Shown here: piece by piece, positions 27,738 through 53,237 of the stretch | Position numbering within the stretch: position 1 is the first letter of the stretch | Layout: each line of letters starts with the position of its first letter | Sequence record: NC_014636.1 | Length of the DNA: 64,000 bases | Direction: 5' to 3' (one strand) | Notes under the pieces: model-generated | The model's database searches: none | Told to the model about the DNA's origin: nothing | What the model saw: only the letters and a program-made list of their open reading frames with translations | Position numbers and translations under genes: made by a program

Positions 27738-27810
27738 AAAATCTCTTATATATCTTATATGAGAATTTACTTTGTCTTTTCGTTAGAAATCAATATGTTA
27801 GCTTCGCAGT
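27738..27810. repeat. Conserved non-coding element, copy 1
   Basis: About 70 bp, roughly 75% identical by eye to 53159-53229. Confidence 0.8.
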
Positions 27811-27864
27811 CGCTGGCGCGACATTTGGAGTTTAATTATTATACTATCTATTCACCAAATCGAT

Positions 27865-27925
27865 TTGGAGCGATTCCTTATCTAATTGATATCATCGCAT
27901 AGACTATCGCTAGGAATCGCTCCAA
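27865..27925. repeat. Perfect 14-bp inverted repeat in the ndd upstream intergenic region
   Basis: TTGGAGCGATTCCT (27865-27878) / AGGAATCGCTCCAA (27912-27925), 33-nt loop. Confidence 0.85.
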
Positions 27926-27935
27926 TGTCTTCCTA

Positions 27936-28157
27936 TTAACAGGAGAAAGTCATATGATCATAACAGTATTGAATGATCTCTTGTTGACGTTTGTTATCCC
28001 AATAGAAGAAATCCTTATCGGTACCTCTGATTGAATCCGCCAGTTCCGTTGGCAAGTTGTTGAACAACGCTTGACCAAAACGGTATTGGTCGCTTGTCTC
28101 GCAAATGCTCTTGCGGATAAGATCATACATCTGCGGTACAGTGAGTTTCATTGTCAT
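27936..28157 (-). CDS. Hypothetical protein
   Basis: GGAG SD before ATG 28157; R.GQA.FN.L motif seen in small myophage proteins. Confidence 0.65.
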   Translation of the reverse strand: MTMKLTVPQMYDLIRKSICETSDQYRFGQALFNNLPTELADSIRGTDKDFFYWDNKRQQEIIQYCYDHMTFSC

Positions 28158-28158
28158 A

Positions 28159-28725
28159 TCAGTTGCTCCAGTCATAGTCAACGCCCAGAAAGTCGAATAC
28201 TTCTACCAGTTCGGCTTTCACGGTACGAGCACAGTTGGCGTGCTTCATTTGTTTGATTGTCGGTGGTGTCAGATGCGCTACCGCGTTTCCGAAAGCTTCG
28301 ATACGCGAGTGGGTCGCATCCATTGCCGAACGTTGCATGTCATACAGTGCTTCCTCAGAAACACGGCACATATACAGGTGGCAATGCATACCACTTTCAG
28401 GAATCTTGTGTGTGCAAAGATGCAGCAGATGATCTGGATTCGGAGTGTATCCAATTTCTTCTTTGCATTCGCGCACCGCAGCTTCGATCAGGCTTTCGCC
28501 TTCATCTACCATACCACCCGGGAAGCCGAAACGAGAATCCCAACGAACATTCAGAAGGATTTTGTGTGCCCAAACGTGCTTCTTGTCTTCTGGGAAAGTC
28601 GGGTCGGTTGTATTGATATATGGCTGCACTTTGTCACAGTAGAAGCAGACAAACGCAGCATCCGATTTGCCACGTGCACCGCTTTCTACTTCAATGCAAT
28701 CGACAAACGATTTAAATGATTTCAT
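28159..28725 (-). CDS. Nudix hydrolase, NUDT16/X29-like
   Basis: Nudix box [23 protein letters not shown] preceded by [14 protein letters not shown], compare NUDT16 [16 protein letters not shown]. Confidence 0.85.
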   Translation of the reverse strand: [188 protein letters not shown]

Positions 28726-28754
28726 TTTGTTTACTCTCTTTGGTTGATGTGCTC

Positions 28755-28782
28755 AGTATACTGGTTCAGAATCACAAGTCAA
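28755..28782 (-). promoter_or_regulatory. Sigma70-type early promoter for the Nudix gene
   Basis: TTGACT-16 nt-TATACT with an upstream A-tract. Confidence 0.7.
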
Positions 28783-28794
28783 CACTTTTTAAAA

Positions 28795-28822
28795 TAAAAA
28801 AGCCACCCGAAGGTGGCTTTTG
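28795..28822 (-). terminator. Intrinsic terminator after rIIB
   Basis: AGCCACC-TTCG-GGTGGCT plus T-run on the minus strand. Confidence 0.85.
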
Positions 28823-28826
28823 ATGA

Positions 28827-30125
28827 TTAGTGCTTACCAAACTCTTTGGTAATGTCTTTCAGAACCTTGAACTCACAGCAACGCATTTTTGCGCCCTTGT
28901 AGTCTTTCGGAACTGCTACTACATGCTGAGGATCAACTTGTACCAGCAGAATACGACCTTGACCACCGTGATAGTTCGGGATGTAGTGTCGAGCTGCTAC
29001 GTGGAGACCGGCAGAACAAGTTGCGTCGGAGCTGTCACACTTAGCACGATCCAGTTTAACCGTTTCACCTACTTTGTTTGAAAGCTTACCGGTATAAAAG
29101 TCTTTATAATCGGTAGTGCAACGACGATAAGCATGGACGAAACCGTCGGTGGTGATTTCGATGTCGTTGTGCTCAAGGAAGTCAAACAGGCCTTCGATTG
29201 CTTTCTTGTTCGGATTCAGCAGCAGTTTTTCGAGAAACGCTACCAGGTGACCGAACGGCTTACCATCGTGCATGTTGCTGATGATACGCTTTACAACAGA
29301 ACCACCAATTTCCAGACCCTTATAAGTAACAACATCATTTTCTACCTTGAGTTGACCTTTAGCATAAGAGCTAACACCCTTAGCAACGTTGATCAGACCC
29401 AGAGCTTTCAGAACATCACCAGCGATACACAGATCCAGAGCTTTGCGGAACTGTTCGTGACTGCTATCGGCAGTGTAAGTCTTACCGTCTGCCATGATGT
29501 TGATGAACTTGGTAGACGCGAACCACTTGAGTTCTTTCGGAGTCTCAACCGGTGCAACAGCCGGAGAACCAGGACGACGGGCTTTTACGCCTTTACGCTT
29601 GAGAACTTCACCAACAGTGCTTTCAGAGCAACCAACCAGGGATGCGACAGTCTTTTGGGACTTGTACTCACCGGTGGTATAGAGTTCGACGATTTTTGCG
29701 TCTCGCTCGTCAGCTCGTTTGTCTGCTTCGTGAAATCGAGCGCCCAGATGGGTGTCCTCTTTCTTCGGTACAACCGGAGCGGCTTTCGGAGCAACAACAG
29801 CAGGTTTAGCAACTGGTGCGGCTTTAGTTGCCGGAGCTACGTTACCACGAATTGCTTCGATGATCTTGCGAGCTTCGGATTCTTTGATATTCAGACGCTT
29901 GGCCAGAACAGTGCGACCCAGTTTGCCTTCCAGAATCTCTTTGCGCATAGCTTCGGTAACACCGTTGCTCGGCTGTTTTGCCTTAGCCAGTCGATCTTCT
30001 TCTTTTACGAGTTCGATCATTTTACGAGCTGCGGATTCGCCGATGTTCAGTTCGCGAGCCAGTACGCCACGACCCAGAGTGCCAGCCAGAATACGTGCTT
30101 TTTGTTGTTCAGTCAGTTTAGCCAT
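28827..30125 (-). CDS. rIIB: rIIB protein with repeated N-terminal HTH modules
   Basis: W.AS.KFINI, DSSH..F, GKPFGHLVAFLEKLLLNP, FLEHNDIEIT.DG..AYR, CSAGLHV, K.RCCEFKV. Confidence 0.95.
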   Translation of the reverse strand: MAKLTEQQKARILAGTLGRGVLARELNIGESAARKMIELVKEEDRLAKAKQPSNGVTEAMRKEILEGKLGRTVLAKRLNIKESEARKIIEAIRGNVAPATKAAPVAKPAVVAPKAAPVVPKKEDTHLGARFHEADKRADERDAKIVELYTTGEYKSQKTVASLVGCSESTVGEVLKRKGVKARRPGSPAVAPVETPKELKWFASTKFINIMADGKTYTADSSHEQFRKALDLCIAGDVLKALGLINVAKGVSSYAKGQLKVENDVVTYKGLEIGGSVVKRIISNMHDGKPFGHLVAFLEKLLLNPNKKAIEGLFDFLEHNDIEITTDGFVHAYRRCTTDYKDFYTGKLSNKVGETVKLDRAKCDSSDATCSAGLHVAARHYIPNYHGGQGRILLVQVDPQHVVAVPKDYKGAKMRCCEFKVLKDITKEFGKH

Positions 30126-30204
30126 TTTACAGTTTCCTTTTCTTGTCAGGTTTGATTAGTTTAACGCTTTTGATTCTCATAATAAACATTATCTCCTTCT
30201 CATA

Positions 30205-30243
30205 ACGTGCGGTCATTATCTCATATGAATGACCGCACGTCAA
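30205..30243 (-). promoter_or_regulatory. rIIB promoter embedded in a 13-bp perfect inverted repeat
   Basis: TTGACG-17 nt-GATAAT; arms ACGTGCGGTCATT 30205-30217 / 30228-30240. Confidence 0.7.
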
Positions 30244-30246
30244 TAT

Positions 30247-32445
30247 TTATTTTACAGCAACTTGAACAATGTTTGTCGCAGTTGCATCTGGGATACTATA
30301 TACGGAGTTGGTATAAGCGACGATCAGAGGGTTATTCTTCTCGAACTCTTTTACCTTAACGTATGCGATATCATACGCTTTTCTTTCCAGTTCTGCAATA
30401 GCATCATGCAGACTTTTGCCGTTTGTCAGCTTGAGATCTGACATAGAATTCCGAGCACGACGCAAGAAATTACCGATCTCACTCACTTTGCCGTTATTAC
30501 AGATCTGATCTACCAGCGGCTTGGTGATAACGTTGCTTTCGAGACGACCAACCCAACGTTCCATGACTTGCACACCAAAGTGGGTTTCGTCAACGGCATC
30601 GGCATGTTTCAGAACATCAAACTGGATAATATCCTGAGATACCTGAGTGATATTCTTGTTCTTCCATGCACGTTGGAAGTGCGTAGGCTTGAACATATAA
30701 ACGGTTTTCTTCTCTACAGCAGCCCATTGAGAAATCAGCTCAGAGCTATACAGATTCACGCTCTTCCAATCGCCAAACTTCTCTTTGGTCTTACCGGATT
30801 TCAGAGTCTCGATGGTAATTGTCGGAGTAACATGACGCGGATTGCTCCACTCATAGCCCATCCAATAACAATCTTTCAGCTCGTCGATGTCTTCCACGTA
30901 CATCTGTTTTTCTTTGTAGATGCCATTTTCGTACACGACCACGTTAGTGGCTTTACCGGTACGCTTCTTGACTTCTACCAGACCCTTGTCCTTCATTTCT
31001 TTCAGAACATCGGCGCGAACTTTGGACAGAGTGACAATCATTTTGTCCTTCATCCGAGTCGGCCAGTATCCCAGGTAATGAATCAAGTTTTCTTTGTACG
31101 CATCACCGATTGTACCACGTGATGGGTCTTTCTTGTCGATTGGCGTAGTGTTGGCTACGTCAAACACCAGTGCACCTTCGACTCGGAACTTGTTCAGACG
31201 ATGCAGAGCCATCATAACTTCGCCAGCTCCGGATTTCAAGTCGTTAATGATTACACGCTTGAAATTGGCATCAAATCCAACCATGTTGCTGGTATAGCGG
31301 ATCTTGTTTTTGCGAACAGTGACACCAACGCTTGCATTCTGCAAATACACTTCCGTGTTCGGACGGGTATAGCTATTGAAATGCGCTTTCCACTGTTGGA
31401 TAGTCTTGCCGTGGAACACACGATTTTCGATCATTCGGCGCCATACGTCATGCGGCAGTCTGCCGTTGATTGACTTATACAGCTCGAATATGTCATTGGA
31501 CTTATCAAAAATCTTGTCAATTTCCACATCATGAACTTTGTTCAGAATCTTGATTCGCTTGTCAATAGAAGCGATGGTATCAGGGTCCAAACTCAGTTCT
31601 TCGCGGCTCGGAGTCATATCAAGTTCACCGATTTCGAAGCGAACGTAATAAGACTTGTCTTTAGCAAACAGCCCGATCATGGTGTTGTTCCAGTATTCGC
31701 TCGGGATTGGGTAAACTACACCACCCATAACAGCGAACACACCGTTACCATGTTGTGAGCGAGTATTCCAGCCACCTTCTACCTTACAGATACCATCGGC
31801 ATCGAAATCCAGGTAGTTGATTGTGATCGACTTACCAACGAAACGAGGACGATATTTCTCGAAAGAGCAGAATACGCGGGCGGCTTCTTGTTCCCAAGTG
31901 TTCATGTCATTACTAACAGGTACGGTAACTTCAACACCAGTCGGCTCGTTGCTTTCTTCTTCGAACATTTTCATGATGTTCGGCTCGCCGTTCTTCATGA
32001 ATGCGCTGTAAATGCGCTTGAATCCGCCGTGCCAGGAAGTCACTGTGAACGTATCGGTATACGCAAACGGAGACTTACAACCAAGACCGAAACCACCGAT
32101 TTCATCGTTACTGTTCGACTTGGTACTTGCAAAATAAGTGCAGTACAGCCCGGTAACATCTTCCTCACTCAGACCAATACCGTAATCACGGACGCTGAAT
32201 TGTTGGTTCAGTACACTCGGCAGAGTAACGTCGAAAGTAGTCTTAACATCTACCCCAGTGCGAGCCAGAGCGATATGACCGTCTACCGCGTTGCAACACA
32301 GTTCACGAATGATGGCGCGTTGCTTGTACTTATACAGAGAACTGGACAGAATCTTGAATGCTTTTGCACTAGCCAGAATTTTGAATCCAGAACTCATGTC
32401 CGCGGCGCTGCCGTAGATCTCGGTTTGTTCCTGATGAATTTTCAT
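30247..32445 (-). CDS. rIIA: rIIA protein (GHKL ATPase N-terminal domain)
   Basis: AFKILSSSLY..K.RAIIRELCCNAVD, RDYGIGLS, IGGFGLGCKSPFAYTD. Confidence 0.96.
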   Translation of the reverse strand: MKIHQEQTEIYGSAADMSSGFKILASAKAFKILSSSLYKYKQRAIIRELCCNAVDGHIALARTGVDVKTTFDVTLPSVLNQQFSVRDYGIGLSEEDVTGLYCTYFASTKSNSNDEIGGFGLGCKSPFAYTDTFTVTSWHGGFKRIYSAFMKNGEPNIMKMFEEESNEPTGVEVTVPVSNDMNTWEQEAARVFCSFEKYRPRFVGKSITINYLDFDADGICKVEGGWNTRSQHGNGVFAVMGGVVYPIPSEYWNNTMIGLFAKDKSYYVRFEIGELDMTPSREELSLDPDTIASIDKRIKILNKVHDVEIDKIFDKSNDIFELYKSINGRLPHDVWRRMIENRVFHGKTIQQWKAHFNSYTRPNTEVYLQNASVGVTVRKNKIRYTSNMVGFDANFKRVIINDLKSGAGEVMMALHRLNKFRVEGALVFDVANTTPIDKKDPSRGTIGDAYKENLIHYLGYWPTRMKDKMIVTLSKVRADVLKEMKDKGLVEVKKRTGKATNVVVYENGIYKEKQMYVEDIDELKDCYWMGYEWSNPRHVTPTITIETLKSGKTKEKFGDWKSVNLYSSELISQWAAVEKKTVYMFKPTHFQRAWKNKNITQVSQDIIQFDVLKHADAVDETHFGVQVMERWVGRLESNVITKPLVDQICNNGKVSEIGNFLRRARNSMSDLKLTNGKSLHDAIAELERKAYDIAYVKVKEFEKNNPLIVAYTNSVYSIPDATATNIVQVAVK

Positions 32446-32494
32446 TTACATATCTCATGGTTGGCATTATATATTCCTCACATACGTTACAATA

Positions 32495-32528
32495 ACTGGA
32501 TAATACACGATGATTATCCAGTAGTCAA
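32495..32528 (-). promoter_or_regulatory. rIIA promoter embedded in a 10-bp perfect inverted repeat
   Basis: TTGACT-17 nt-TATTAT; arms ACTGGATAAT 32495-32504 / ATTATCCAGT 32513-32522. Confidence 0.7.
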
Positions 32529-32535
32529 TTACTTT

Positions 32536-32847
32536 TTACAGGTATTCGTCGAACCAGCGTTCACCAAGCTCTTCCAGATCGACATCATAGCCGAAGATCA
32601 GACGAAGATTGGCAGTTTTATGTGTGATTTCTTTGGTTTCTACCAGAGATTCGCGCAACTTCTTGATCTCATTCTTGACGGAAGACAGAACCAGGATGTT
32701 GTTTTCCTTGCAATGCTCTTCCCATTCTCCGAACTTCATATCGAAGAACTTGATAAACTTCTCACGAAGAAAAGTCATCTTGCCGATCTTGATACACGGT
32801 GTGATCTTCTTACCGATGTCTCCCAGATTCTTGGTCATGCTGTTCAT
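32536..32847 (-). CDS. Hypothetical protein
   Basis: 103-aa ORF contiguous with the CYTH gene. Confidence 0.55.
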   Translation of the reverse strand: MNSMTKNLGDIGKKITPCIKIGKMTFLREKFIKFFDMKFGEWEEHCKENNILVLSSVKNEIKKLRESLVETKEITHKTANLRLIFGYDVDLEELGERWFDEYL

Positions 32848-32849
32848 TA

Positions 32850-33320
32850 TTAAACCTTCTGTTTGATAGCGTTTTTAGCCATTCGACGATTAGCGTATTT
32901 CTTATCGCCGGTCACTTCTTTGCCGATCCAGTTGGGAAGAGGCAGAATTTCTTCTTTCTCATGGTTCAACTCGATTTCCGCAACTTGGAGTCCAGTATAC
33001 GGGTAAGAGCTAAAGGTGTCAAGCTCAATTTTATGTTTTCCGTGCTGATAAACATCGCGAATCTTTTCGAGGATGCCAGCGGGATTAGCATAGCGACGGG
33101 CGAACTCATAGACGAACTTGGGGATACGGGTCTCCAGTTCAATCTTGCTCATGCCTTTGCCGATCTTCATGTTCCAGTAATAAGACGTCAAACCCTCAAC
33201 TTGCTTGCGGAATCGCAGCTTGCCGAAGTAAAACTGAGTGATTGCAATACGACGAATCGGAATGTCATCGATGATCACATGCTCATTTCTCAGGAACTTA
33301 CGTTCAATTTCGAGTAACAT
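32850..33320 (-). CDS. CYTH / triphosphate tunnel metalloenzyme
   Basis: True start MLLEIERKFL (ExExK) at 33320 with GGAG SD; EKIR, IELD.F, AEIEL, WIGKEVTGD..Y. Confidence 0.88.
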   Translation of the reverse strand: MLLEIERKFLRNEHVIIDDIPIRRIAITQFYFGKLRFRKQVEGLTSYYWNMKIGKGMSKIELETRIPKFVYEFARRYANPAGILEKIRDVYQHGKHKIELDTFSSYPYTGLQVAEIELNHEKEEILPLPNWIGKEVTGDKKYANRRMAKNAIKQKV

Positions 33321-33369
33321 ATTTCTCTCCTTTGTAAAGCATACAATATACGCTTTAAAAAGGAGGGTG

Positions 33370-35214
33370 TCAACCCTCCTCCTCAATTTCTGCATCAAAA
33401 TCTTCACCGAAACCAAGCCATGTTTTACGCTTGCTTTCATCATCACCGAACAACATTTCCAGCATAGCGGGAGTGTCTTCGTCGATAACGATCTGTTCCA
33501 ACACAAGATTTTCGATACACTGCTTGTATTCGCAGTTTTTACCTTCGGTAGTCAGTGTGCCAAGACCCTTAATGTGTCGATGTGTCCACTTGCTATCGAA
33601 TTTCTTAGAACGGAACTCTTCGCGTGAATAGCTCCAATCAGTTTTCTTACCGTTGGTACTGATATACTCAGGTGTCCTAACGATATGAATACGACCTTGC
33701 TCGAACCAATGTGGCCAATACTTGTAGAAGAATGCAATAGCCAGCATAGCGATTGAACCCTTACCGTCTTGGTCCGCGTCGGTCATGATTGCGATGTTTG
33801 TATAAGCCGGAGCTTCTTTCGACCGAAGATCAACGTTAAGAATACCAAGCAGATCTGAAATCTCCTTGTTCTTCAACACTTCATGATCAGCTAAGTTCCA
33901 AACGTTCAGCATCTTACCACGCAACGGATAGCCGCCTTGTGACTCTTCGTTACGGAATCGAATGAAAGGACCGATAGCTGAATCCCCTTCTGCCAGGAAC
34001 AAAGTTGTCTTGGTTCGACCCAGTCCAGACGCTTTAACGTGCTTGGCAACGTTGGCAGCTTTCGCTTTCTTCTGTGCTTTGGTAGCCGCTGCTTTATCGG
34101 CAGCTTCTTTCTTCGCAAGTGCAGACGCGATAATCGGATCAATAACTTCCGGTGTTTTCAGAATCTTGCGAGCCAATCCCTTGTAATCCAAGTTCATGTG
34201 ATCGCGAATCTGTGCCCACGGGGAGCTTAACCGCTCTTTTGTCTGACCATCATACTTCGGCGCTACCAGATTACGAATAAACAAGCCAATAATCAAGCAT
34301 TCTTTAATTCGAGCTTTGTTAATTTCGATCTTGTGCTGACGCTTGATCATCGGGATCAGTTCTTCGCTCAGACTATCAAGCACACCATAAACGTGATTGC
34401 CGCCTTGCTTAGTATGAACACCGTTAACAAAACTCAGTTGTCTGTATTCTTCCGATGTGCCAAAGAACACACTAACATTGTCATCATTGTGACAAACAAC
34501 ATCGCCGAATTGTGCCGCAAACTTCTGGAATTTGCTATCGACTTTCTTGCCGTTATACTTGAATGTAACTTGTGGGAAGTTCACTGCCAGCGTGATTAGA
34601 CGCGACTTGATCACTTGCTCAAAGTCTTCATCAAGATTGAATACGCCGAATCTGGTGAAGTCTGGGACGAAGGTAACAACCGTGCCCTTGAACTTACCTT
34701 TCTTCACGGAATAGCTTACTTCATCCGCGTTGTTTGTGCAACTTACAGTAACAACAGTTTCGCCATTACCAGTTTCGCCAATAAAGCTATCGGAGAAGAA
34801 GTTAGTCAGCGCAGAGCCGACACCGTTTTTACCGATTGTCTTTCGATCTGCGGAGAAGTTTGAGCCGGCGCGAGCGCGAGTCCAAGCAGCTAGTGGCAAC
34901 GGAACTTCTAACCCCTCGGGTGTGACTACCGTGCCTTGTGGCAGACCACGACCGTTATCTTTCACCGACACTTTATTATCGGCAACAGTGATTTCAATCA
35001 CGTTTGCATGTTCGAAATTGGTACGAATCGCTTCATCCACGCTGTTATCGATAACTTCGTCGGTGATTTTTACCAGACCAGGAACATACGTTAGTGGTTG
35101 AAATTTACCATCGATTAGTACATCGTGTGTTTCCGTCGATACTGATCCCACATACATATCGGTGTTAATAAGGCAGTGTTCTTTGTCGGATAAAACTTTA
35201 AACTCTTGGGACAT
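33370..35214 (-). CDS. 39: DNA topoisomerase II large subunit (gp39 and gp60 fused, no bypass)
   Basis: EVIDNSVDEA, DNGRGLP, GKNGVGS, LAEGDSA, YPLRGK, MTDADQDG, KGLG in one frame; start MSQEFKV at 35214. Confidence 0.96.
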   Translation of the reverse strand: MSQEFKVLSDKEHCLINTDMYVGSVSTETHDVLIDGKFQPLTYVPGLVKITDEVIDNSVDEAIRTNFEHANVIEITVADNKVSVKDNGRGLPQGTVVTPEGLEVPLPLAAWTRARAGSNFSADRKTIGKNGVGSALTNFFSDSFIGETGNGETVVTVSCTNNADEVSYSVKKGKFKGTVVTFVPDFTRFGVFNLDEDFEQVIKSRLITLAVNFPQVTFKYNGKKVDSKFQKFAAQFGDVVCHNDDNVSVFFGTSEEYRQLSFVNGVHTKQGGNHVYGVLDSLSEELIPMIKRQHKIEINKARIKECLIIGLFIRNLVAPKYDGQTKERLSSPWAQIRDHMNLDYKGLARKILKTPEVIDPIIASALAKKEAADKAAATKAQKKAKAANVAKHVKASGLGRTKTTLFLAEGDSAIGPFIRFRNEESQGGYPLRGKMLNVWNLADHEVLKNKEISDLLGILNVDLRSKEAPAYTNIAIMTDADQDGKGSIAMLAIAFFYKYWPHWFEQGRIHIVRTPEYISTNGKKTDWSYSREEFRSKKFDSKWTHRHIKGLGTLTTEGKNCEYKQCIENLVLEQIVIDEDTPAMLEMLFGDDESKRKTWLGFGEDFDAEIEEEG

Positions 35215-38113: not shown

Positions 38114-39129
38114 TCGGAAAGTCTACGTTTAGCACTAAGTCCAGATACCGTATTCTGTTTGAGATACGTTTCGATTTGTTGAACAGTCGCGCCTTCATCT
38201 TTGATCATATCATTGATGTCCTTCGAGTGGAATGGACAATCTAACCATACGACCACCTTTTCACCAGCGTCTATAAGCTTCTCCAGACGCTCTACCGTCT
38301 CTTTGCTTCGCGGCTCGTTGTCTAACACCCACACACGCTTACCTTTGAATGGAGCGTCTGCCAAGTGCATAGAACCACCGACGATTGCCAAAGAGTTCGG
38401 AATAAATGTGCTGTCTATTGGACCTTCGAAGTACCAGACAGTCTTTGTTCCGTCAACGCGCTCAAGTCCATAAACTTTGTTCGCATCGTCGGACGGCTTC
38501 ACAGTCAGATACCGCTGATTTTTGTCAACGTTTCCCAATGCTCGACCTTGAATACAGCTCACCGTACCGTCAGCATTATAGATGGGAATTACCAATCGGT
38601 ATTCTTTCTCGATATGCTTGTAAGTATCGGGTTTTATGTGATTGCTCAGACCTTTCCAGTTGTCGGTGAAGTAGAACAGTTTCAAGTTCTCTTTCGGGAT
38701 ACAGCGATGAAGCATGTATTTTACAACTGGATGCGCTTCTGGCAGTTCAGATAGTCTAACACAAAACGGCAGTTCGGAAACAATTTTTTGCTCTTTTTTC
38801 TCAAGTTTCGCACCGAGGTCTAGCTTGACTTCTGACCGTTTTGGCTTGCTGTCCTTATACTTCTCTTTGATATACTCGCGGTATAGTTCTTCATGATACA
38901 GTTGGAGATATAGAGAAAACGGAAGCTGTTTGCCGCAGTTGAAGCAGCCATAGAAAACTTGTCCGTCGCGTTCGTAAAACCATCCGCGAGACTTGTATTT
39001 GTCTTTTTGTGAGTCGCCACAAATGTGACAACGGAAGTTATACTTGATTTCATGCGCACGGCTGTGATCCGAAAACATCGGCAACACAAACGCTATTTGA
39101 TGCGCCATTTGTCGTTGAATGTAAAGCAT
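38098..39129 (-). CDS. 61: DNA primase gp61
   Basis: RCHICGDSQKD..K.RGWFY, CFNC, EGPIDS, DNEPR, KDINDM; likely start MLYIQ at 39129. Confidence 0.96.
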   Translation of the reverse strand: MLYIQRQMAHQIAFVLPMFSDHSRAHEIKYNFRCHICGDSQKDKYKSRGWFYERDGQVFYGCFNCGKQLPFSLYLQLYHEELYREYIKEKYKDSKPKRSEVKLDLGAKLEKKEQKIVSELPFCVRLSELPEAHPVVKYMLHRCIPKENLKLFYFTDNWKGLSNHIKPDTYKHIEKEYRLVIPIYNADGTVSCIQGRALGNVDKNQRYLTVKPSDDANKVYGLERVDGTKTVWYFEGPIDSTFIPNSLAIVGGSMHLADAPFKGKRVWVLDNEPRSKETVERLEKLIDAGEKVVVWLDCPFHSKDINDMIKDEGATVQQIETYLKQNTVSGLSAKRRLSEWRKI

Positions 39130-46256: not shown

Positions 46257-46275
46257 ACTTCTTACCTCTTGTCAG

Positions 46276-46295
46276 TGCGCCTTTCAGGGGTCGCA
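46276..46295 (-). promoter_or_regulatory. Candidate gp43 translational operator hairpin
   Basis: TGCG-ACCCCTGAAAGG-CGCA stem-loop 7 nt upstream of the GAGG SD; T4 gp43 represses its own translation through such a hairpin. Confidence 0.4.
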
Positions 46296-46341
46296 TCTTG
46301 AGTAAAACATCCATAATATGCCTCTCACAAATTGAAAGCTG

Positions 46342-46380
46342 ATTATAGATGTGCCCTCGGTTGTTGTCAACTAAGGGCAC
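46342..46380 (-). promoter_or_regulatory. Gene 43 promoter with the -35 inside a 7-bp inverted repeat
   Basis: TTGACA-17 nt-TATAAT; GTGCCCT 46351-46357 / AGGGCAC 46374-46380. Confidence 0.8.
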
Positions 46381-46387
46381 AGAAGAA

Positions 46388-46756
46388 TTACATACCGAAC
46401 TTATACTTGTGAATCAGTGTCCAGTTGTGCTTGTCTTTGTGAGAGATAACTCGGAAGAAGTTATTGCCAGGGGCAACTTGATCACTGACGATTTCACACA
46501 TATTCCATTCTTGCAACAGAGTAGCGATGTCGTTACGACGGTCGATATCTTCTTGACCGATCTCTACCTGACGGCCATCGAGTTGGAGCAGTTCCTTGAA
46601 GTGAACGATGTAATACTTGCCTTGCTTTTGCAGAATGTGGCAGCTTTGATACAGCTTCTTTGCCACGTTGTTAGCGATACCGATACGGGTCAGAGTCTCG
46701 CGGATTTTCAGAAAATCATCATCAGTTTTCAGTTTAATTTGCAGCATCATTTTCAA
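46388..46756 (-). CDS. regA: Translational repressor RegA
   Basis: DDFLKIRETLTRIGIAN, LYQSCHILQKQGKYYIVHFKE. Confidence 0.97.
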   Translation of the reverse strand: MKMMLQIKLKTDDDFLKIRETLTRIGIANNVAKKLYQSCHILQKQGKYYIVHFKELLQLDGRQVEIGQEDIDRRNDIATLLQEWNMCEIVSDQVAPGNNFFRVISHKDKHNWTLIHKYKFGM

Positions 46757-46762
46757 TATTCC

Positions 46763-47344
46763 TTACCATGAACGAATTGCGCGTTGAATCTTTTCACGCT
46801 CAGTTTTTGTTGGGATCATAGTCAAGCACGGTGCGTTGACATCAATTACAGTCGGAGAAAACATTTTCTTTAGCCGACCGATTTGTTCTTCCGTAAAGCC
46901 CGCGATGTATTCACGCGCTCTCGAAATGGAAACTTCGTAATACTCAGAAACAAGATATTCGAATGCACGAAGTTCCCAGTCGCCAGTTATCTTGGCGAAT
47001 TTTACCTTTGGTAGACTGCATTGTCGGATCGTGAAATACATATAATCATAATGCATTTGATCTGAAATAAAGCCTTCCATACTGTTAAGCTCGGAAGCAT
47101 AACCACTCATTGTAACGTGCTGTGATAGCGCGTTATTGATCATATGTTGATCGTAATCGCTGAAACGTTCAACAGTGCCGTGGCCTAGCTTCTTGGTAAC
47201 GTTATCGATAATCACGAACAAGCTTTGCTCGGCAGGAACTTTAAACTGCTTGCTCAATTCTTTAACAGCGTCCCAATCTCTGGAACGCCATGCGATTTCG
47301 TGTTCGTTTAGATCTTCTTCATCAAGAAACGCGGCTAAGCTCAT
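46763..47344 (-). CDS. 62: Clamp loader small subunit gp62
   Basis: EHEIAWRSRDWD, MINNALSQH, MHYDY; synteny 44-62-regA. Confidence 0.92.
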   Translation of the reverse strand: MSLAAFLDEEDLNEHEIAWRSRDWDAVKELSKQFKVPAEQSLFVIIDNVTKKLGHGTVERFSDYDQHMINNALSQHVTMSGYASELNSMEGFISDQMHYDYMYFTIRQCSLPKVKFAKITGDWELRAFEYLVSEYYEVSISRAREYIAGFTEEQIGRLKKMFSPTVIDVNAPCLTMIPTKTEREKIQRAIRSW

Positions 47345-48313
47345 TTACTTCCACTCCATTTCCATGCTCAAATCAGCAAGCAGATCGAACAGATGGATTT
47401 CCATATTCGGGATATCGTTCGCGAACTTCTGATTTTCAGCGATATATTTGATCATCATGCGAATACTTGTCGGCTTGATTTCCAAGAACAGACGTTCATA
47501 CAGCTTTGTGATAAAGCTATCATAATCGACGGTAAACTTCGGAACAAGTGCGCGAATATCACCAAGCTTTTTATTCTTGAGCATGGTAACAACGTCATTC
47601 ATGTCCTCGACTGCTTGAGTCGCTTTAGTCAAAACGCCTTCATCGATCTTACCAGATTTTGCATAACTATCTAAGGTTGTGATTGTACCGCGAACATCAG
47701 GAAAATTCTGTTTAACCAATGCGGCGATAGCTTTACGAGATTCTACAACAACGCCTTCCATTTCGCAAATCTTTTCGCATCGAACGATCATTTCTTTCAT
47801 CATTCGAATTTTGTCATTTGCAGTCGGATTACCGAACTCAACTTGACGGAATCGAGATTTCAGAGGAGCCGGAATCGCTTCAACGTTGTTACATGTCATG
47901 ATCACAGAGCAGTTAGAGCTAAACGCTTCCATCCAAGAACGGAGTTCTTCATGAACAGCTTTCATACCCTTGTTATCACCTTCGTCGATGATGATAACTT
48001 TGCCACCCGGCTTGCTTGTCATGGTAGAAGCGAAGTTGGTCAGATCATTACGCAAATCGTCAATGCGCAGTTTGCCACCGGAGATAAACATAACTTCGGC
48101 GTCGATCTCGTTACACAGAACACGTGCCATGGTAGTTTTACCAGTGCCCGGACTCTTGGAGAAGAGGAGAATATGAGGAATTCGACCACTCGCAACAATG
48201 CCACGAAAACGTTCGGCATCAGCGTCTGGAAGAATACATTCGGAGATAAGTGCGGGACGATATTTTTGTTCCCACATGAATTCTTTTGGATCAGATACAG
48301 TTACAACAGTCAT
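47345..48313 (-). CDS. 44: Clamp loader large subunit gp44
   Basis: WEQKYRP, SPGTGKTT, IIDEGD, SRF; likely start MTVV at 48313. Confidence 0.96.
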   Translation of the reverse strand: MTVVTVSDPKEFMWEQKYRPALISECILPDADAERFRGIVASGRIPHILLFSKSPGTGKTTMARVLCNEIDAEVMFISGGKLRIDDLRNDLTNFASTMTSKPGGKVIIIDEGDNKGMKAVHEELRSWMEAFSSNCSVIMTCNNVEAIPAPLKSRFRQVEFGNPTANDKIRMMKEMIVRCEKICEMEGVVVESRKAIAALVKQNFPDVRGTITTLDSYAKSGKIDEGVLTKATQAVEDMNDVVTMLKNKKLGDIRALVPKFTVDYDSFITKLYERLFLEIKPTSIRMMIKYIAENQKFANDIPNMEIHLFDLLADLSMEMEWK

Positions 48314-48358
48314 TTTATGTCTCTCAGTGCATGGGTAAAACAGTTTAGAATATCTTGT

Positions 48359-48396
48359 ATTATAAACTATTCTAAGTGGGGAGGTCAAGCCTCCCC
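48359..48396 (-). promoter_or_regulatory. Gene 44 promoter with the -35 inside a GC-rich hairpin
   Basis: TTGACC-18 nt-TATAAT; GGGGAGG...CCTCCCC inverted repeat right after the gene 45 stop. Confidence 0.55.
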
Positions 48397-48404
48397 GAAC
48401 TCAT

Positions 48405-49079
48405 TTAAACAGCGTATTTGGACTTGGCGTCGAGTGCAATCACGTAATTGGAAGTGCCTTCGAAACGAATTGCGCCTTCTTTAGCGATCATCACTTTGTA
48501 TTTGCCATCGATCATCTTGAGATTACCGATAGACACGATAAAATCAAAGTTAGCATCGGCACCTTCGTAGTCGTCAGCAATAGCAATCTCGAAGGTGTTG
48601 CTGTTGGTCTCGCCACCAGTCAGTCGAGCCAGGATCTTGCGACCGTCGTTGACAAAGTGCAGATCTACCAGGGACATAGTAGAAGCAGACTTGCCGATTT
48701 GCTTAATCTGGTCTTCGGTCAGTTCGAACACAACAGAAGCAGTCGGGAAAGTGATTGCTTTCTTCGGATGGGTAATGGTACCCGCTTCTGCCATCTTGAT
48801 TTTAGCCATCGCACGACCACCGGAAGCATTTTTCACGACGATATATTCACCATCTTCGGTAACTTGTGCAGGCAGACCCACCATCATTGCGACACCCAGA
48901 AACTCGCCCAGACTGTAGATTCGCAGCTCGCTATCAATCTGATCCTTGATGGTGCTTTCAGCATACAGAACGTTATTCACGCTCTTGGTGTTGATGAAAG
49001 TACCCGGTTTCAGAACAACGGACGGGTTGATTTTTGCGAAGTTGGACAGGATTTCTACGGTTTCTTTACTCAGTTGCAT
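48405..49079 (-). CDS. 45: Sliding clamp gp45
   Basis: MQLSKETVEILSNFAKINPSVVLKPG..I.T; F..GN.KM..G.Y. Confidence 0.95.
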   Translation of the reverse strand: MQLSKETVEILSNFAKINPSVVLKPGTFINTKSVNNVLYAESTIKDQIDSELRIYSLGEFLGVAMMVGLPAQVTEDGEYIVVKNASGGRAMAKIKMAEAGTITHPKKAITFPTASVVFELTEDQIKQIGKSASTMSLVDLHFVNDGRKILARLTGGETNSNTFEIAIADDYEGADANFDFIVSIGNLKMIDGKYKVMIAKEGAIRFEGTSNYVIALDAKSKYAV

Positions 49080-49111
49080 TTTAATTCCTCAGTTCATTAC
49101 AGGTCTTTAGT

Positions 49112-49396
49112 TTAAGCGGCTTTCCACTCGGAGTAAACAACGGCAGCGGCATCAGCGAAAAACTCGGTGAAATCACGCTTGCAGTTCAGATTCTCTTTGC
49201 GGAAGTTTTCGGACAGACGCATAGCGTTATCGATTACGTCCTGGTCAAATTCTTTATACAGATCAAAACGAACATCACGCTCCAGACATTGCAGACGATC
49301 ACGATCAGCTTGGCTCATGAGTGCAGTCCAAGACTTGCGGGCCAGGTTCTGATAGAAGTAAGCAGCGGAGGCAGTTTTCAGAGTCACGTCGGTCAT
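49112..49396 (-). CDS. rpbA: RNA polymerase-binding protein RpbA-like
   Basis: Position between 45.2 and 45; RKSW..LMS and Y...D.DV..... pattern; weak similarity only. Confidence 0.55.
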   Translation of the reverse strand: MTDVTLKTASAAYFYQNLARKSWTALMSQADRDRLQCLERDVRFDLYKEFDQDVIDNAMRLSENFRKENLNCKRDFTEFFADAAAVVYSEWKAA

Positions 49397-49550
49397 TTTG
49401 TAAATCCTATTAAGTATGTAAGATATCGTTTCAATCCGAGACACAAACGCTTGTTGTCTCTAGTGTTGGTCATTATACACTGCTTTAGCCATAAGTAAAG
49501 AACTATTATCAAAATGATTGGCGAAAGCAGTGTGAGGATTATTCGGTCAG

Positions 49551-49727
49551 TCATTCTTTCCAAGCTATCCAATAAGGATCGAAATTGTTGATGATCCTAG
49601 TTAGACGTTCTTCTCCGAATGTGGCTACCAGTTGTTGATAGGTAGTCTTGACTTCATGCTCCATTTGCTTGTTTGATAGTATCCAGAATTCCACATCTAG
49701 ATACACATCGGCTATGTTTTCGAACAT
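49551..49727 (-). CDS. 45.2: gp45.2-like conserved hypothetical protein
   Basis: F...ADVYLDVEFW; syntenic between 46 and rpbA. Confidence 0.55.
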   Translation of the reverse strand: MFENIADVYLDVEFWILSNKQMEHEVKTTYQQLVATFGEERLTRIINNFDPYWIAWKE

Positions 49728-49728
49728 T

Positions 49729-52038
49729 TTAAACCATCGTAGTAAAGCGACCTTGCTTTTGCATACGAATGTGGCGATCAAAGCTGTCGTCCATCGCGTC
49801 TTTGCGGTGTGAGATAACGATGATATTGGACTTCATGTCATTGAGCATTTTGTTAATGCCTACAATGCCAGCTTCATCACAACTACCGTCGAACACTTCA
49901 TCCATGCAAAGCAAGTTGATATTAACACCACTGATCATACTGCTAACGTCACGCCATGTAAACAACAAACTGAGATTAATTCGCGCTTTCTCACCTTCTG
50001 AGAAGGAAGCATAACAGAACTCCTCACGACCTCTTGACTTGATTGATTCATTGAATCCTTCGTCCAACGCGAACACATAGTCGGCGCCCAACGATTTCAA
50101 GTAGTCGTTGATTTTCTTGTTGAAAACTGGAATATACCGTTTGACAATATGGGCCTTTACGCCGTTGTCTTTCAACATATCAGCTACAATTGAACGTCTG
50201 TGCAACTCAAGAACAATGTCGGCTATGCCAGACTTGATCTCTTCGATGCGACTTTCAATCTCTTCAAGCTTGGAAGTATCATACTCGGTAGCGTTCAACT
50301 CGTCAATCTGTTTTTTCAAATCTTTTGCACGATTTGCCGCTTCTTCATACGTTTCCATGTTGGTCTTGACATTCATAGCCAACATTTCAAGATTAGCACG
50401 ATGTGCCGCTAGTGTCGAGCTGAAATTTGATTTCAGTTCAGCGATCTTGGCATCCCGTTCGTCTCCAATGCTATCAATCCGACGTTGGAGTGCGTCCTTA
50501 GCTTTCTCGTATGTAGTCTCGATGTGTCGTTTCTTTTCGTATAGACCGTTAAGGCGCTCGTTATACGACACTTTCTGGCGCTCATGATTGAGCGTCATTT
50601 CCGAGATCTGCTTGTCTATGAATGCAATCGCCGCGTGGTGATTTTCACTCAAATTCCGACATTGTTGCGCATATCTCGCGGTAGCTCGCTCATACTCCCG
50701 TTCGGCTTCTCGATTCTGTTCAATGATCTGATTATACGCCGCAAGTTCTCGCTTATAGTTCAGCTCATAGGAAGTTAACCGAGATGTTTCATCAGAGATA
50801 ACAGCCAGCTCGGCTTCCAGTTTCTCGATGTCAGAATCAAGTTCCTCGATGCTATGATCTGCATGAGACGAACAATCAGTACCGCAAGTAGGACACGCGC
50901 CACCTTTCTCGAAGAACTTTTTACGTTCTTGAAGTGCAGATATTTTACCGCGAATATCCCAAGCAGTATTGTCCAACTTGAACTTCTCGTTGGTATAATC
51001 AACTGCAACCGGCTCGGCGACGTCTTGAATAACAAGTTCATCAGGAATAGGCACCAGTGCAGTTGCAGCGCGAAGATCGTCCTCAGTTGGCTTAGATTTC
51101 TCCAGCTCACCGACATCGTGATCCAAAGCACAATCGAACGGTTGATCCATTTGGAGACAAGCAATATCCGAATTGATATCCGCGATGTCGTTGTTTCGCT
51201 GCTCACTCAGAGTCGCAAGTTGTTCAATAAGAGCCTGCGGCTGATATTTCGCAATTATTTCTCGTTCGGCAGTTTCGTCATACACGGGTTCAACTGCGTT
51301 GTCAATCTTCTCCTGATTTATATTCGCCAAATCTTTCGATGTTTTAGCGCGATCAATATCAGAACGGAAATTAGTCACCAAAACGTTGACAAGCATCCCG
51401 GTTTGTTTCTTCTGTGCTTCGATAGCAGATTCAGCAGTTGCGCGTTCGCTTTCGGCAGAGGCAAGCATGGCTTTATTTTGATCCTGTTGCCCTTTCAGCT
51501 CTTTGATCAAAGCTTTGTTTTGCTTATCCATTTCGCCGATAACAGAGACATCAAGCAGATCCTCAACGAGTTCGCGACGCTTACCAGCAGGCAGTTCCAT
51601 GAATGGCTTATAGCCAGCCGTGCCAAGAACGATGATCTGTTTAAAGCTGTCGTAACTGATACCCAGTAATTTCTCTTCGAAATATGCTTGGTACTCGGTC
51701 GCGCTCGCAACTTCTTTCAGTTCTTCACCGTTCTTAGTGATTTTCAACACATTAGGCTTGATGCCTCGAACGATGTGGAACTTGTCTTTACCGACTGAAA
51801 TCTCACCCTCAACGTGCAGTCCCTTTTTGTTGTGACTGTTTACAAGTAAGGGCTTAGGGACATCGCGAAACGCTTTGCCATAAAGCATGAATGTAATCGC
51901 TTCGATGAAGGTAGATTTACCAGCACCGTTAGTACCTGTTACCAGTGTTTTCTTGTGATGATCGAGTTCGATGCGGATGGGCTTTGCGCCCACCGACATA
52001 ATATTTTTGTACTCGACCCAGTGGAATAAAATGTCCAT
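49729..52038 (-). CDS. 46: Rad50/SbcC-like recombination endonuclease subunit gp46, long form
   Basis: GTNGAGKST, CPTC zinc hook, FSEGEKARI, DEVFD. Confidence 0.96.
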   Translation of the reverse strand: MDILFHWVEYKNIMSVGAKPIRIELDHHKKTLVTGTNGAGKSTFIEAITFMLYGKAFRDVPKPLLVNSHNKKGLHVEGEISVGKDKFHIVRGIKPNVLKITKNGEELKEVASATEYQAYFEEKLLGISYDSFKQIIVLGTAGYKPFMELPAGKRRELVEDLLDVSVIGEMDKQNKALIKELKGQQDQNKAMLASAESERATAESAIEAQKKQTGMLVNVLVTNFRSDIDRAKTSKDLANINQEKIDNAVEPVYDETAEREIIAKYQPQALIEQLATLSEQRNNDIADINSDIACLQMDQPFDCALDHDVGELEKSKPTEDDLRAATALVPIPDELVIQDVAEPVAVDYTNEKFKLDNTAWDIRGKISALQERKKFFEKGGACPTCGTDCSSHADHSIEELDSDIEKLEAELAVISDETSRLTSYELNYKRELAAYNQIIEQNREAEREYERATARYAQQCRNLSENHHAAIAFIDKQISEMTLNHERQKVSYNERLNGLYEKKRHIETTYEKAKDALQRRIDSIGDERDAKIAELKSNFSSTLAAHRANLEMLAMNVKTNMETYEEAANRAKDLKKQIDELNATEYDTSKLEEIESRIEEIKSGIADIVLELHRRSIVADMLKDNGVKAHIVKRYIPVFNKKINDYLKSLGADYVFALDEGFNESIKSRGREEFCYASFSEGEKARINLSLLFTWRDVSSMISGVNINLLCMDEVFDGSCDEAGIVGINKMLNDMKSNIIVISHRKDAMDDSFDRHIRMQKQGRFTTMV

Positions 52039-53066
52039 TATTCTCCTTTGCTATGAACAGCATTGGCATAAAGTTCTTGAATGTAGCGATCAACGGCTTT
52101 CTTGTCGTCTTCATCTACAGCCAACCCCTGGATGTAATCTTTCATTTGCTCAATTACTTTCTTCGTCTCGGTGATGTCTTCAACATCAGACGCAAAAGTA
52201 TACATCTGCTTCGGTCGGAACTCAAAGCATATATTCTCCAATTGAGCCATAACAGCGTCCAACTTATCGTCGAACTCATAGATCACCAATTCTACGACCT
52301 TGTCCTTGCATTTGTCAATAGCTTTGATGTCGAAATCTTTGCGATAATCAACTCGAATATGCCACATGTCGGGATTCGCGACAAACTCAATTGTCTTTGT
52401 ATCTGTGTCGAACACCCAGAAGCCACGAATCTCATTACTGTCACCCATAGTCAGAGTGTACGGAGTGCCGAGATAATGGATGTTTGCTTTCTTACTGGAA
52501 GTATGATAGTGACCGCTATATACTTGCTTGTAGCGATTCAGGAACTCCATACTCTCGCCAGTTGACGGAATGCCCTTGTAGAACTCAAACCCATCAAGTT
52601 CCCAGTGTCCAACGCAATAGTCAGAGTTTGTTTCGGCCGCATATTTTTCAATGGCAGCCTCGTTTTCGTCACACTTCCACGGAAACAGATCCCACAAAGT
52701 ATCAGCGAAACCGATTGTTGTGGGCGTTTCGATAACGTGAAATTTTTCAATACCATGAAACACTTCGTTAACACTGTTTGGACTGATTTTATCCTTAACG
52801 TGCATATCGTGGTTGCCCACAATGACATAGATGTCATCGAATGCATCTTGATAGATGGGAGTCAGTTGCTCACGCTGAAATTTCAACGTCTCTTGGCTTA
52901 GACCAGAACGAACGTCGAACCAGTCACCAGTTTGAATCATGTGTCGGATACCATGCTGCTTTGCATAGTTACACAGAAAGATAGATCCACGCAAGATCGC
53001 GTTTGTCATATAAGCACTGTCTTTCTGGGTCCCGACGTGCTTATCACCTTCAATGATAATCTTCAT
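52038..53066 (-). CDS. 47: Mre11/SbcD-like recombination endonuclease subunit gp47
   Basis: GDKH.G, QTGDWFD, GNHD, GHWE, SGHYH, GTPY..T..D; start MKII at 53066 with AAGGA SD. Confidence 0.96.
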   Translation of the reverse strand: MKIIIEGDKHVGTQKDSAYMTNAILRGSIFLCNYAKQHGIRHMIQTGDWFDVRSGLSQETLKFQREQLTPIYQDAFDDIYVIVGNHDMHVKDKISPNSVNEVFHGIEKFHVIETPTTIGFADTLWDLFPWKCDENEAAIEKYAAETNSDYCVGHWELDGFEFYKGIPSTGESMEFLNRYKQVYSGHYHTSSKKANIHYLGTPYTLTMGDSNEIRGFWVFDTDTKTIEFVANPDMWHIRVDYRKDFDIKAIDKCKDKVVELVIYEFDDKLDAVMAQLENICFEFRPKQMYTFASDVEDITETKKVIEQMKDYIQGLAVDEDDKKAVDRYIQELYANAVHSKGE

Positions 53067-53094
53067 ATCGTTTCCTTTGTTGAATGATATCGAC

Positions 53095-53124
53095 ATACTA
53101 CACGATCAAAAACGGTTTGTAAAC
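53095..53124 (-). promoter_or_regulatory. T4-early-type promoter for gene 47
   Basis: GTTTAC-18 nt-TAGTAT with GTG before the -10. Confidence 0.55.
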
Positions 53125-53126
53125 TG

Positions 53127-53237
53127 GTGCTTGCACTTCGAGCGTAGCGAGATAAAACAAAATCTCTTATAGATCTTAATGACAATCTATTTTATCTTCT
53201 TGTTATAAATCAGCGACTTACGTCGCAGTGCAAGCAC
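53127..53237. repeat. Conserved non-coding element, copy 2 (53159-53229), bracketed by an 11-bp inverted repeat
   Basis: GTGCTTGCACT 53127-53137 / AGTGCAAGCAC 53227-53237; core similar to 27738-27810. Confidence 0.8.

Follow-up and report, generated by a model that had tools for sequence, protein, structure and literature searches.

Background

Replication of bacteriophage T4 starts from at least five origins in a 169-kb genome, which share no common motif and of which only two are understood mechanistically (PMC3016281). The oriF (uvsY) and oriG (gene 34) origins combine a promoter with a DNA-unwinding element and are primed by an R-loop, and oriE depends on an early-type promoter (PMC3016281). 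In phage Aeh1, no MotA and no middle-promoter consensus are known (PMC1524935). How T4-type phages choose their replication starts is still poorly understood. Another class of intergenic elements described in T4-type genomes, the promoter-early stem-loops (PeSLs), are found at about 50 copies per genome in hyperplastic regions. They carry strong near-consensus promoters with a 17-nt spacer, face the downstream ORF and mark indels (PMC2839356, PMC4122927).

The window analysed here is a 64,000-nt stretch (positions 62001-126000) of the genome of Aeromonas phage phiAS5. It contains members of a family of seven intergenic elements of the Aeh1-like T4-type Aeromonas phages that, judging from sequence comparison, are most likely the points at which the phage DNA opens and are candidate replication starts. 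No paper describing the element or its family was found in the literature, and it is not among the entries of the published Aeh1 promoter tables.

Copies in the window and in the genome

The sequence-only reading had described two copies of an element of about 70 bp, and both sequences sit exactly at 27738-27810 (copy A) and 53159-53229 (copy B). Their alignment shows 90% identity over a 29-nt block and another conserved run of about 45 nt. A search of the 225-kb genome aligns copy B to copy A with 83% identity over 64 nt (E = 1.6e-12), a likeness which is therefore not due to chance. The duplication is real, but the copy number in the phiAS5 genome is seven and not two; likewise, the proposed core was recovered, but the full element with its flanking hairpins extends over about 110-135 bp (Table 1). 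The bracketing inverted repeats noted earlier are present (6 nt at copy A and 11 nt at copy B), and each copy does lie directly upstream of a minus-strand sigma-70-type promoter, that of an ndd-like gene or that of gene 47. The small GAGA/TCTC stem exists in phiAS5 but is peculiar to this phage and is not kept across the family. Positions 38988-39013 of the window, which resemble a third copy, were rejected as a chance match, because nhmmer (--max) returns nothing there.

The genome search and nhmmer identify exactly seven sites in phiAS5. The search of relatives that had been suggested found the same seven syntenic sites in phiWae14, avDM12-TAAL, Aeh1, Ah1 and PX29, that is, 45 copies in six genomes of three genera. 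Neither extra nor empty sites occur in these genomes, and the only change in number concerns one site, where three phages have the element twice in tandem. All sites share a conserved core of 78 nt, which is much better kept than the intergenic DNA around it. For five of the seven, the surrounding phiAS5 and phiWae14 sequences are at least 99.4% identical, and one (copy B) lies about 50 bp or less from a mosaic boundary between these two phages. Wider searches used two IUPAC patterns (the 50-nt core; the right arm plus box). They matched only Aeh1, Ah1 and PX29 in IMG/VR and no element copy in 185,579 bacterial and archaeal species genomes, which argues against a host or satellite copy.

The sites are evenly spaced, with one per ~32 kb and a coefficient of variation (CV) of 0.25 (range 0.20-0.28). 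This evenness (P ~0.001 when compared with random positions and 1e-4 to 7e-4 with random intergenic gaps) reflects a single ancestral arrangement passed on to the six genomes and does not count as six independent observations. Every site is placed where one transcription unit has ended and before the promoter that follows. A canonical sigma-70 promoter stands beside the element at at least four phiAS5 sites, and a late-type motif at three. GC skew tracks transcription direction in this genome; only sites d and b are within 3-4 kb of a GC-skew turning point, a number not above chance.

Organization of the element

Each unit has an imperfect AT-rich palindrome of 50 bp with a conserved box located 19 nt to one side of it, and GC hairpins flank the whole. 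When the 225-kb genome is ranked in 60-bp segments from the least stable duplex upwards, the seven elements take places 1, 2, 4, 5, 6, 7 and 9. Pairing between the palindrome arms is kept in 94% of cells, against 44-62% in slid controls, and three pairs exhibit compensated double changes. Both strands fold equally well, which points to DNA rather than RNA as the level at which the structure is kept. Most of the 45 copies have a GC hairpin at a distance of 0-9 nt from the box, and the flanking mini-hairpins are of the GNA type. Many copies, though not all, have short inverted sequences at their ends (ACTGCG/CGCAGT, GCTAA/TTAGC or, in copy B, the 11-nt pair). An ATG located inside the element was considered as the start of a small peptide and discarded: it is not kept as a reading frame, which is interrupted by a stop codon in copy b and ends differently in other copies.

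The box resembles the consensus WATCAANNNNTTR of the host DNA-bending protein IHF. The fit is perfect in three of the seven phiAS5 boxes and in most copies of Aeh1, Ah1 and avDM12, and the other four phiAS5 boxes carry one mismatch. A T-rich tract precedes the box on its 5' side. The box is constant across genera and the palindrome arms vary by lineage. Since matches to the consensus are not in excess in the phiAS5 genome as a whole (13 for ~15 expected), this resemblance is suggestive only and the box is best described as a candidate IHF site.

Promoter-like hexamers are also present within the element (TTGATT, 18 nt, TAAATT or TAGATT), with 8 of 12 consensus positions. They are not called by the promoter scan, for which, in copy A, this low number of matching positions accounts. 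None of the early promoters published for Aeh1 is located within an element, and the Mot box (TGCTT near -30) is absent from the conserved core.

Table 1. Features of the two copies of the element in the window and of the adjacent signals (window coordinates)
Feature	Position	Strand	Remarks
Copy A, whole element (site d, upstream of ndd-like gene)	27691..27822	.	left 6-nt inverted repeat to right GC hairpin
Copy A, inverted repeat arms	27691-27696; 27805-27810		ACTGCG; CGCAGT
Copy A, left GC hairpin GCGGC-ATA-GCCGC	27694..27706	.	abuts -35 of ndd promoter
Copy A, AT-rich imperfect palindrome	27728..27778	.	alignment A2 columns 4-54; candidate unwinding/cruciform segment
Copy A, conserved box AATCAATATGTTAGC	27788..27802	+	perfect fit to IHF consensus WATCAANNNNTTR
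Copy A, putative internal promoter-like pair TTGATT, 18 nt, TAAATT	27764..27793	-	leftwards into palindrome
Copy A, right GC hairpin GTCGC-TGGC-GCGAC	27809..27822	.	
ndd-like gene, canonical early-type promoter TTGACA-17-AATAAT	27661..27689	-	11/12, TG ahead of -10
Copy B, whole element (site a, upstream of gene 47)	53127..53237	.	enclosed by 11-nt inverted repeat
Copy B, 11-nt inverted repeat arms	53127-53137; 53227-53237		
Copy B, AT-rich palindrome	53149..53198	.	one base shorter than other copies
Copy B, degenerate box AATCAGCGACTTACG	53208..53222	+	one mismatch to IHF consensus
Copy B, right GC hairpin GCGAC-TTAC-GTCGC	53213..53226	.	overlaps box
Intrinsic terminator of gene upstream of copy B	53252..53271	-	8-bp stem and T run
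Gene 47, canonical promoter TTTACA-17-TAGTAT	53095..53123	-	immediately past copy B in transcription direction

Copy A folds as single-stranded DNA with z = -4.95 on the plus strand and -4.43 on the minus strand, and the palindrome alone forms a hairpin of -9.3 (top strand) or -7.8 kcal/mol (bottom strand) with DNA parameters. The reverse complement of its box reads as the -35-like TTGATT. The promoter of the ndd-like gene adjoins copy A but lies outside the element itself. Four metagenome DNA runs over 25200-30700 have a depth of ~5 or less, so few reads that the absence of read-end pile-ups is uninformative. Copy B is the most diverged copy in phiAS5 and folds with z = -4.2 and -4.1; its palindrome includes an independent compensated T-A pair (alignment columns 8/50). 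In the direction of transcription it is immediately preceded by the terminator of the upstream gene.

Concerted evolution and inversion in place

The copies evolve in concert within a genome. Palindrome identity reaches 98% within Aeh1 and 94% within PX29, against 80% between orthologous sites of these two phages. This is what one would expect if a single trans-acting partner were shared by all sites, or if the sites recombined with one another. In addition, the element is flipped in place between phages at two of the seven sites (d and g/h), while the flanking genes and their canonical promoters are unchanged; it therefore does not serve the adjacent gene. At most sites the element is co-oriented with transcription; at e, d and h it runs opposite to the gene downstream of it.

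Possible functions of the element

Taken together, the results favour a genome-wide DNA-level site over a gene-specific promoter of the PeSL type, a small RNA, a peptide or a recently mobile element. Like PeSLs, the element associates a repeated intergenic stem-loop with an AT-rich tract and -35/-10-like boxes over ~100 bp conserved in T4-type genomes. It might represent a stem-loop terminator and early promoter for the downstream gene and also supply a patch of homology through which gene modules are shuffled; the GC hairpin directly upstream of the hexamers in an AT-rich intergenic context, and the mosaic boundary near copy B, agree with this. However, PeSLs number ~50 each in phi1 and RB49, clustered in hyperplastic regions (PMC2839356), and have no counterpart of the long AT palindrome, whereas the present element occupies seven even syntenic sites in free orientation. 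Its hexamers are weak with an 18-nt spacer and have no equivalent among the published Aeh1 early promoters, neighbouring genes often possess their own canonical promoter or late-type motif, three sites face away from the downstream gene and five of the seven lie in DNA nearly identical between phiAS5 and phiWae14, so that a PeSL-like role appears improbable. Just as improbable, in our view, is a MITE-, REP- or Correia-type palindromic repeat, selfish or neutral, that is homogenised by phage recombination and stays in tolerant intergenic gaps without a function for the phage. Bacterial BIME-1/RIP elements consist of REP hairpins flanking an IHF site. In BIME-1/RIP, Correia and ERIC-type repeats, GC hairpins or inverted repeats flank a central or lateral IHF consensus and the units are dispersed between genes, as in the present family; the terminal inverted repeats and hairpins, concerted evolution, in-place inversions and tandem doubling would suit such an origin, and an internal IHF-like box is described for some bacterial MITEs (PMC2229807). 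Those repeats, on the other hand, number from tens to hundreds of copies, vary in presence or absence, are not regularly spaced and are not known to carry a 50-bp AT palindrome. Here, all seven sites are filled in six genomes with non-random spacing, the core is far better kept than its surroundings, and no copy is present in the 185,579 species genomes or in other IMG/VR contigs.

The earlier suggestion of a duplicated small RNA finds no support: the Rfam 15 scan of the whole window gives no match at the gathering score, the element is inverted with respect to transcription at two of the seven sites, it lies between terminator and promoter at gene 47, and its strands fold equally. The broader view of an RNA-level element, either a small RNA or an AU-rich hairpin acting in read-through transcripts as an RNase III cut site or mRNA-end stabiliser, would account for the ~25-bp hairpin with internal mismatches available on either strand and for the intergenic, mostly co-oriented positions. 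It is nonetheless very improbable: G-U versus mismatch patterns exhibit no strand preference, orientation flips, copy B and its orthologues follow a strong terminator and precede the next promoter, and even spacing has no rationale in terms of RNA. Docking sites for an architectural or regulatory DNA-binding protein, with the palindrome arms as dimer half-sites and no part in replication, fit the data better but still seem unlikely. They might mark topological domains or topoisomerase/gyrase sites, IHF-bent insulators between units or loading sites for a tracking factor, for example the late-transcription clamp. Compensated changes preserve the dyad symmetry, and the arms are lineage-specific and uniform across the copies of one genome, as expected of sites co-evolving with a phage-encoded protein; even spacing, location between unit end and next promoter and free orientation are also consistent with docking. 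However, no candidate protein was identified, a plain binding site needs neither extreme melting propensity nor GNA-type mini-hairpins, and dozens of other unit boundaries in the genome do not carry the element.

A replication origin or protein-binding site, as put forward in the sequence-only reading, is still the best interpretation and is strengthened by the spacing, low duplex stability, IHF-consensus box and gene-independent orientation, the role itself being that of a candidate. More precisely, the seven sites may form a cis-acting DNA family that acts chromosome-wide as replication or unwinding sites of the promoter-plus-DUE type, a reading to which we give somewhat less than an even chance. 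A bending protein or RNA polymerase would bind the box, and the weak hexamers (TTGAT, 18 nt, TAGATT or TAAATT) would read into the AT-rich segment, which would open. The opened segment or an R-loop might then be the start of DNA replication; alternatively, cruciform cutting could be followed by recombination-dependent replication. Seven roughly equidistant starts would let the 225-kb genome be copied quickly. The stronger form of this model, in which equidistant origins defined by AT palindrome, IHF-type box and mini-hairpins stable in single-stranded DNA are recognised by one co-evolving trans-acting factor, possibly phage-encoded, is conceivable but doubtful. If true, this would be the first origin motif shared within the T4 superfamily. 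The element provides a precise, mutable and clonable target for studies of origin firing, DNA opening, IHF dependence and trans-factor co-evolution in large T4-type phages, several of these phages being under development against the fish pathogen Aeromonas salmonicida. Even if the sites prove not to be origins, some other chromosome-level function would still be indicated by their regular spacing and by the way in which the copies evolve in concert.

Comparison with T4 origins

The candidate sites had been proposed to be distinct from the R-loop origins of T4. Their anatomy, with promoter-like hexamers directed into an AT-rich unwinding segment, is instead closer to oriF and oriG than it is different. 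In both cases several sites occur at similar density (at least 5 per 169 kb in T4 and 7 per 225 kb here), and both are intergenic with a promoter, putative in the present element, leading into a short, easily melted AT-rich segment. However, T4 origins have no sequence motif in common and use MotA-dependent middle promoters, whereas the present sites share the 78-nt core, palindrome and IHF-like box. As T4 origins lack a common motif, a sequence-defined origin family would be unlike T4. Synteny with oriF was not observed either, uvsY (genome positions 30562-30942) being ~15 kb or more from the nearest site. The weak internal promoter (8/12, 18-nt spacer) and its absence from the published Aeh1 early promoters, the lack of a motif common to T4 origins, the lack of oriF synteny, the proximity of only two sites to GC-skew turning points and the genome-wide number of IHF consensus matches were counted against the origin reading. 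A further parallel, as an origin-associated, sequence-defined repeat that is syntenic in relatives, is the iteron cluster of T4 oriE (PMC3016281) which, unlike the single palindromic unit found here at seven loci without direct repeats, is composed of tandem 12-nt direct repeats at one locus.

Copies of the element in phiAS5 and related phages

The window (62001-126000, + strand, of the 225,268-bp phiAS5 record, NC_014636/HM452126) holds two copies of the element, copy A upstream of an ndd-like gene and copy B upstream of gene 47 (Table). Both strings on which the sequence-only reading was based lie exactly where it had placed them. The copies have in common a 29-nt block (90% identity) and, after it, a conserved stretch rich in AT; in a search of the genome the match of copy B to copy A has E = 1.6e-12. 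The inverted repeats described around them were recovered (6 nt, ACTGCG/CGCAGT, for copy A; 11 nt for copy B), as was the leftward promoter proposed next to each: both copies are located just upstream of minus-strand sigma-70-type promoters. The small GAGA/TCTC stem is also present but is specific to phiAS5; in the other phages this position pairs instead with the distant arm.

The presumed pair is however part of a larger set, as a whole-genome search gives seven copies in phiAS5. With every filter turned off, a profile search identified no additional or degenerate copies in this genome and dismissed a candidate third window copy at 38988-39013. The comparison with relatives that had been called for shows that the family is limited to Aeh1-like Aeromonas phages (phiAS5, phiWae14, avDM12-TAAL, Aeh1, Ah1, PX29 and AsFcp_1/2/4), with seven sites in each of the six fully scanned genomes, which represent three genera. 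The gp54/gp26 site carries two tandem copies in Aeh1, Ah1 and avDM12, and the six genomes contain 45 copies in total. No copy was found in IMG/VR contigs other than these phages, nor in bacteria and archaea (185,579 species, one genome each). At the sites compared, the neighbouring genes encode orthologous proteins in collinear order, and flanking sequences agree site by site between phages. Together with the constant number per genome, this indicates that the seven sites are ancestral and that none was gained or lost. The avDM12-TAAL record starts and ends with the same ~470-bp stretch, which contains element g (record ends L021 and L024); the assembly probably overlaps itself or was broken at the repeat.

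The sites are spaced much more evenly than chance (CV 0.20-0.28 in each seven-site genome; P about 0.001 against random positions). For phiAS5 this evenness also stands against random picks among 44-88 real intergenic gaps (P = 1e-4 to 7e-4), and PX29, with all seven sites, shows the same spacing. Since the six genomes are related, the spacing is a single ancestral arrangement rather than six independent tests.

Table. Positions of the element copies and neighbouring features (window coordinates unless marked genome)
Feature	Position	Strand	Remark
Element copies, phiAS5	genome ~7.8, 46.0, 89.8, 115.2, 134.4, 174.2, 204.4 kb		whole-genome search; third is copy A, fourth is copy B
Copy A (site d)	27691-27822		
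Copy B (site a)	53127-53237		
Sigma-70-type promoter, ndd-like gene	27689->27661	-	just downstream of copy A
Sigma-70-type promoter, gene 47	53123->53095	-	just downstream of copy B
13-bp inverted repeat	27865-27925		TTGGAGCGATTCC / GGAATCGCTCCAA, 35-nt spacer
Intrinsic terminators	3233-3270, 28793-28830, 53245-53282		near-identical
Segment through gene 47 and copy B	52800-53700		~84-86% identity, phiWae14 vs phiAS5
Direct repeats (examples)	15218-15271, 15521-15574, 16049-16102, 20547-20600		28-135 nt, within 8000-21500
phiAS5_ORF0008	genome 7133-7828		locus L006, outside window
CTAAATA motifs	genome ~7.9, 204.3, 174.1 kb		gp3 (L006), gp26 (L002), ORF0265 (L005), loci outside window

Element organization

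The 78-nt core shows a mean identity of 88% over 41 aligned copies. Columns 4-54 of the alignment (A2) form an AT-rich imperfect palindrome whose outer 11-bp arms and inner 4-bp stem are paired in 94% of cells; sliding the partner column lowers this to 44-62%. Three palindrome pairs have changed on both sides; a compensated pair is G-C in PX29 and C-G or A-T in Aeh1, and copy B carries an independent T-A pair at columns 8/50. The best-conserved non-palindromic block, the box ATCAAnnnGTTAGC, lies 19 nt to one side of the palindrome. In phiAS5, the box of copies d, f and b matches the IHF consensus WATCAANNNNTTR perfectly and that of the remaining four differs at one position; most Aeh1, Ah1 and avDM12 copies also match perfectly. 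The opposite strand of the box reads as a -35-like TTGAT located 18 nt from TAGATT/TAAATT. The core is flanked by GC-rich mini-hairpins, many with GNA-type loops, of which the box-side one is fixed 0-9 nt past the box and the far-side one lies at a variable distance (1-42 nt). Folded as single-stranded DNA, the whole unit gives z scores of -4.1 to -5.0 against shuffles on both strands, and the palindrome by itself gives -7 to -10 kcal/mol for each strand. Duplex stability was computed over the whole phiAS5 genome from nearest-neighbour energies in windows of 60 bp. The seven elements occupy ranks 1, 2, 4, 5, 6, 7 and 9 when positions in the 225 kb are ordered from the least stable duplex upwards, ~4 SD from the genome mean. 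phiAS5_ORF0008 is annotated as starting at an ATG in the element c palindrome, but translation more likely begins at a further ATG shortly after the element.

The palindromes show concerted evolution, with an identity of 98% among the Aeh1 copies and 94% among those of PX29, but only 80% between these two phages, whether at the same site or not. This lineage-specific resetting is weaker in the box and spacer. The element is moreover inverted in place at two orthologous sites, d (copy A) and g/h, where flanking genes and canonical downstream promoters are unaltered. At site d, phiAS5, PX29 and phiWae14 have one orientation and Aeh1, Ah1 and avDM12 the opposite; at g/h, phiAS5 and avDM12 are opposed to Aeh1, Ah1 and PX29. 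In every phage, the element that follows the spanin genes lies antisense to the local direction of transcription.

Possible functions

Promoter-early stem-loops (PeSLs) carry near-consensus promoters aimed at an ORF; a genome contains ~50 of them, concentrated in hyperplastic regions, and they mark indels (PMC2839356, PMC4122927). A PeSL-type promoter or leader for the next gene does not fit this family of seven sites: the element hexamers are weak and were not called by the promoter scan, no entry of the published Aeh1 early-promoter list falls inside an element, neighbouring genes have their own promoters, and element orientation is free. Moreover, phiAS5 and phiWae14 share at least 99.4% identity in the DNA around five of the seven sites. 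The duplicated small RNA suggested earlier, or an RNA hairpin, is unlikely: Rfam gives no match, strand bias is absent, the element inverts between phages, and copy B and its orthologues are preceded by a strong terminator and followed by the next promoter. Stops and non-conserved frames rule out a coding peptide, and perfect site conservation a recently mobile MITE.

What remains is a genome-wide, orientation-tolerant cis element operating at the DNA level. The best, if tentative, reading is a candidate replication origin or unwinding site, replication origins being the first of the roles originally proposed. The combination of a melting AT palindrome, an IHF-type box, promoter-like hexamers, edge hairpins and regular spacing resembles what replication origins typically look like. 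The hexamers read into the easily melted AT segment, which the IHF-type box adjoins, and the edges carry hairpins stable in single-stranded DNA. T4 oriF and oriG have a similar promoter plus DNA-unwinding element design (PMC3016281), a parallel that places the design closer to T4 R-loop origins, contrary to the distinction from them drawn in the sequence-only reading. The 169-kb genome of T4 contains at least five origins, of which oriE needs an early-type promoter (PMC3016281). Unlike the present family, however, T4 origins have no common motif; in addition, Aeh1-type phages, unlike T4, lack MotA (PMC1524935) and the element sites are not syntenic with uvsY. The main rival to the origin reading is a non-replicative protein-docking site. 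A variant in which cruciform cutting would seed recombination-dependent replication is inseparable from the origin reading. The literature searched holds no account of the element family.

Neighbouring features

Beside copy A, just past the ORF0126 stop, lies a 13-bp inverted repeat that is kept in Aeh1. PX29 has a different 13-bp sequence there that is still self-complementary, so that the hairpin itself seems selected, possibly as a terminator or RNA element. Three intrinsic terminators of the GGCTCC-CGAA-GGAGCC stem plus T run type are reused at different gene ends. phiWae14 is ~99% identical to phiAS5 except in the segment spanning gene 47 and copy B, and nothing in it matches phiAS5 to the right of the terminator beside copy B (boundary near 53278). 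The segment is a mosaic replacement with its edge beside copy B, and the element of phiWae14 in this place appears Aeh1-like. Direct repeats inside large late (tail-fibre-like) genes indicate repeated protein modules. Finally, the ribosome-binding sites of gp3, gp26 and ORF0265 are each preceded at ~20 nt by a CTAAATA motif, probably the late-promoter form of the Aeh1-like clade.
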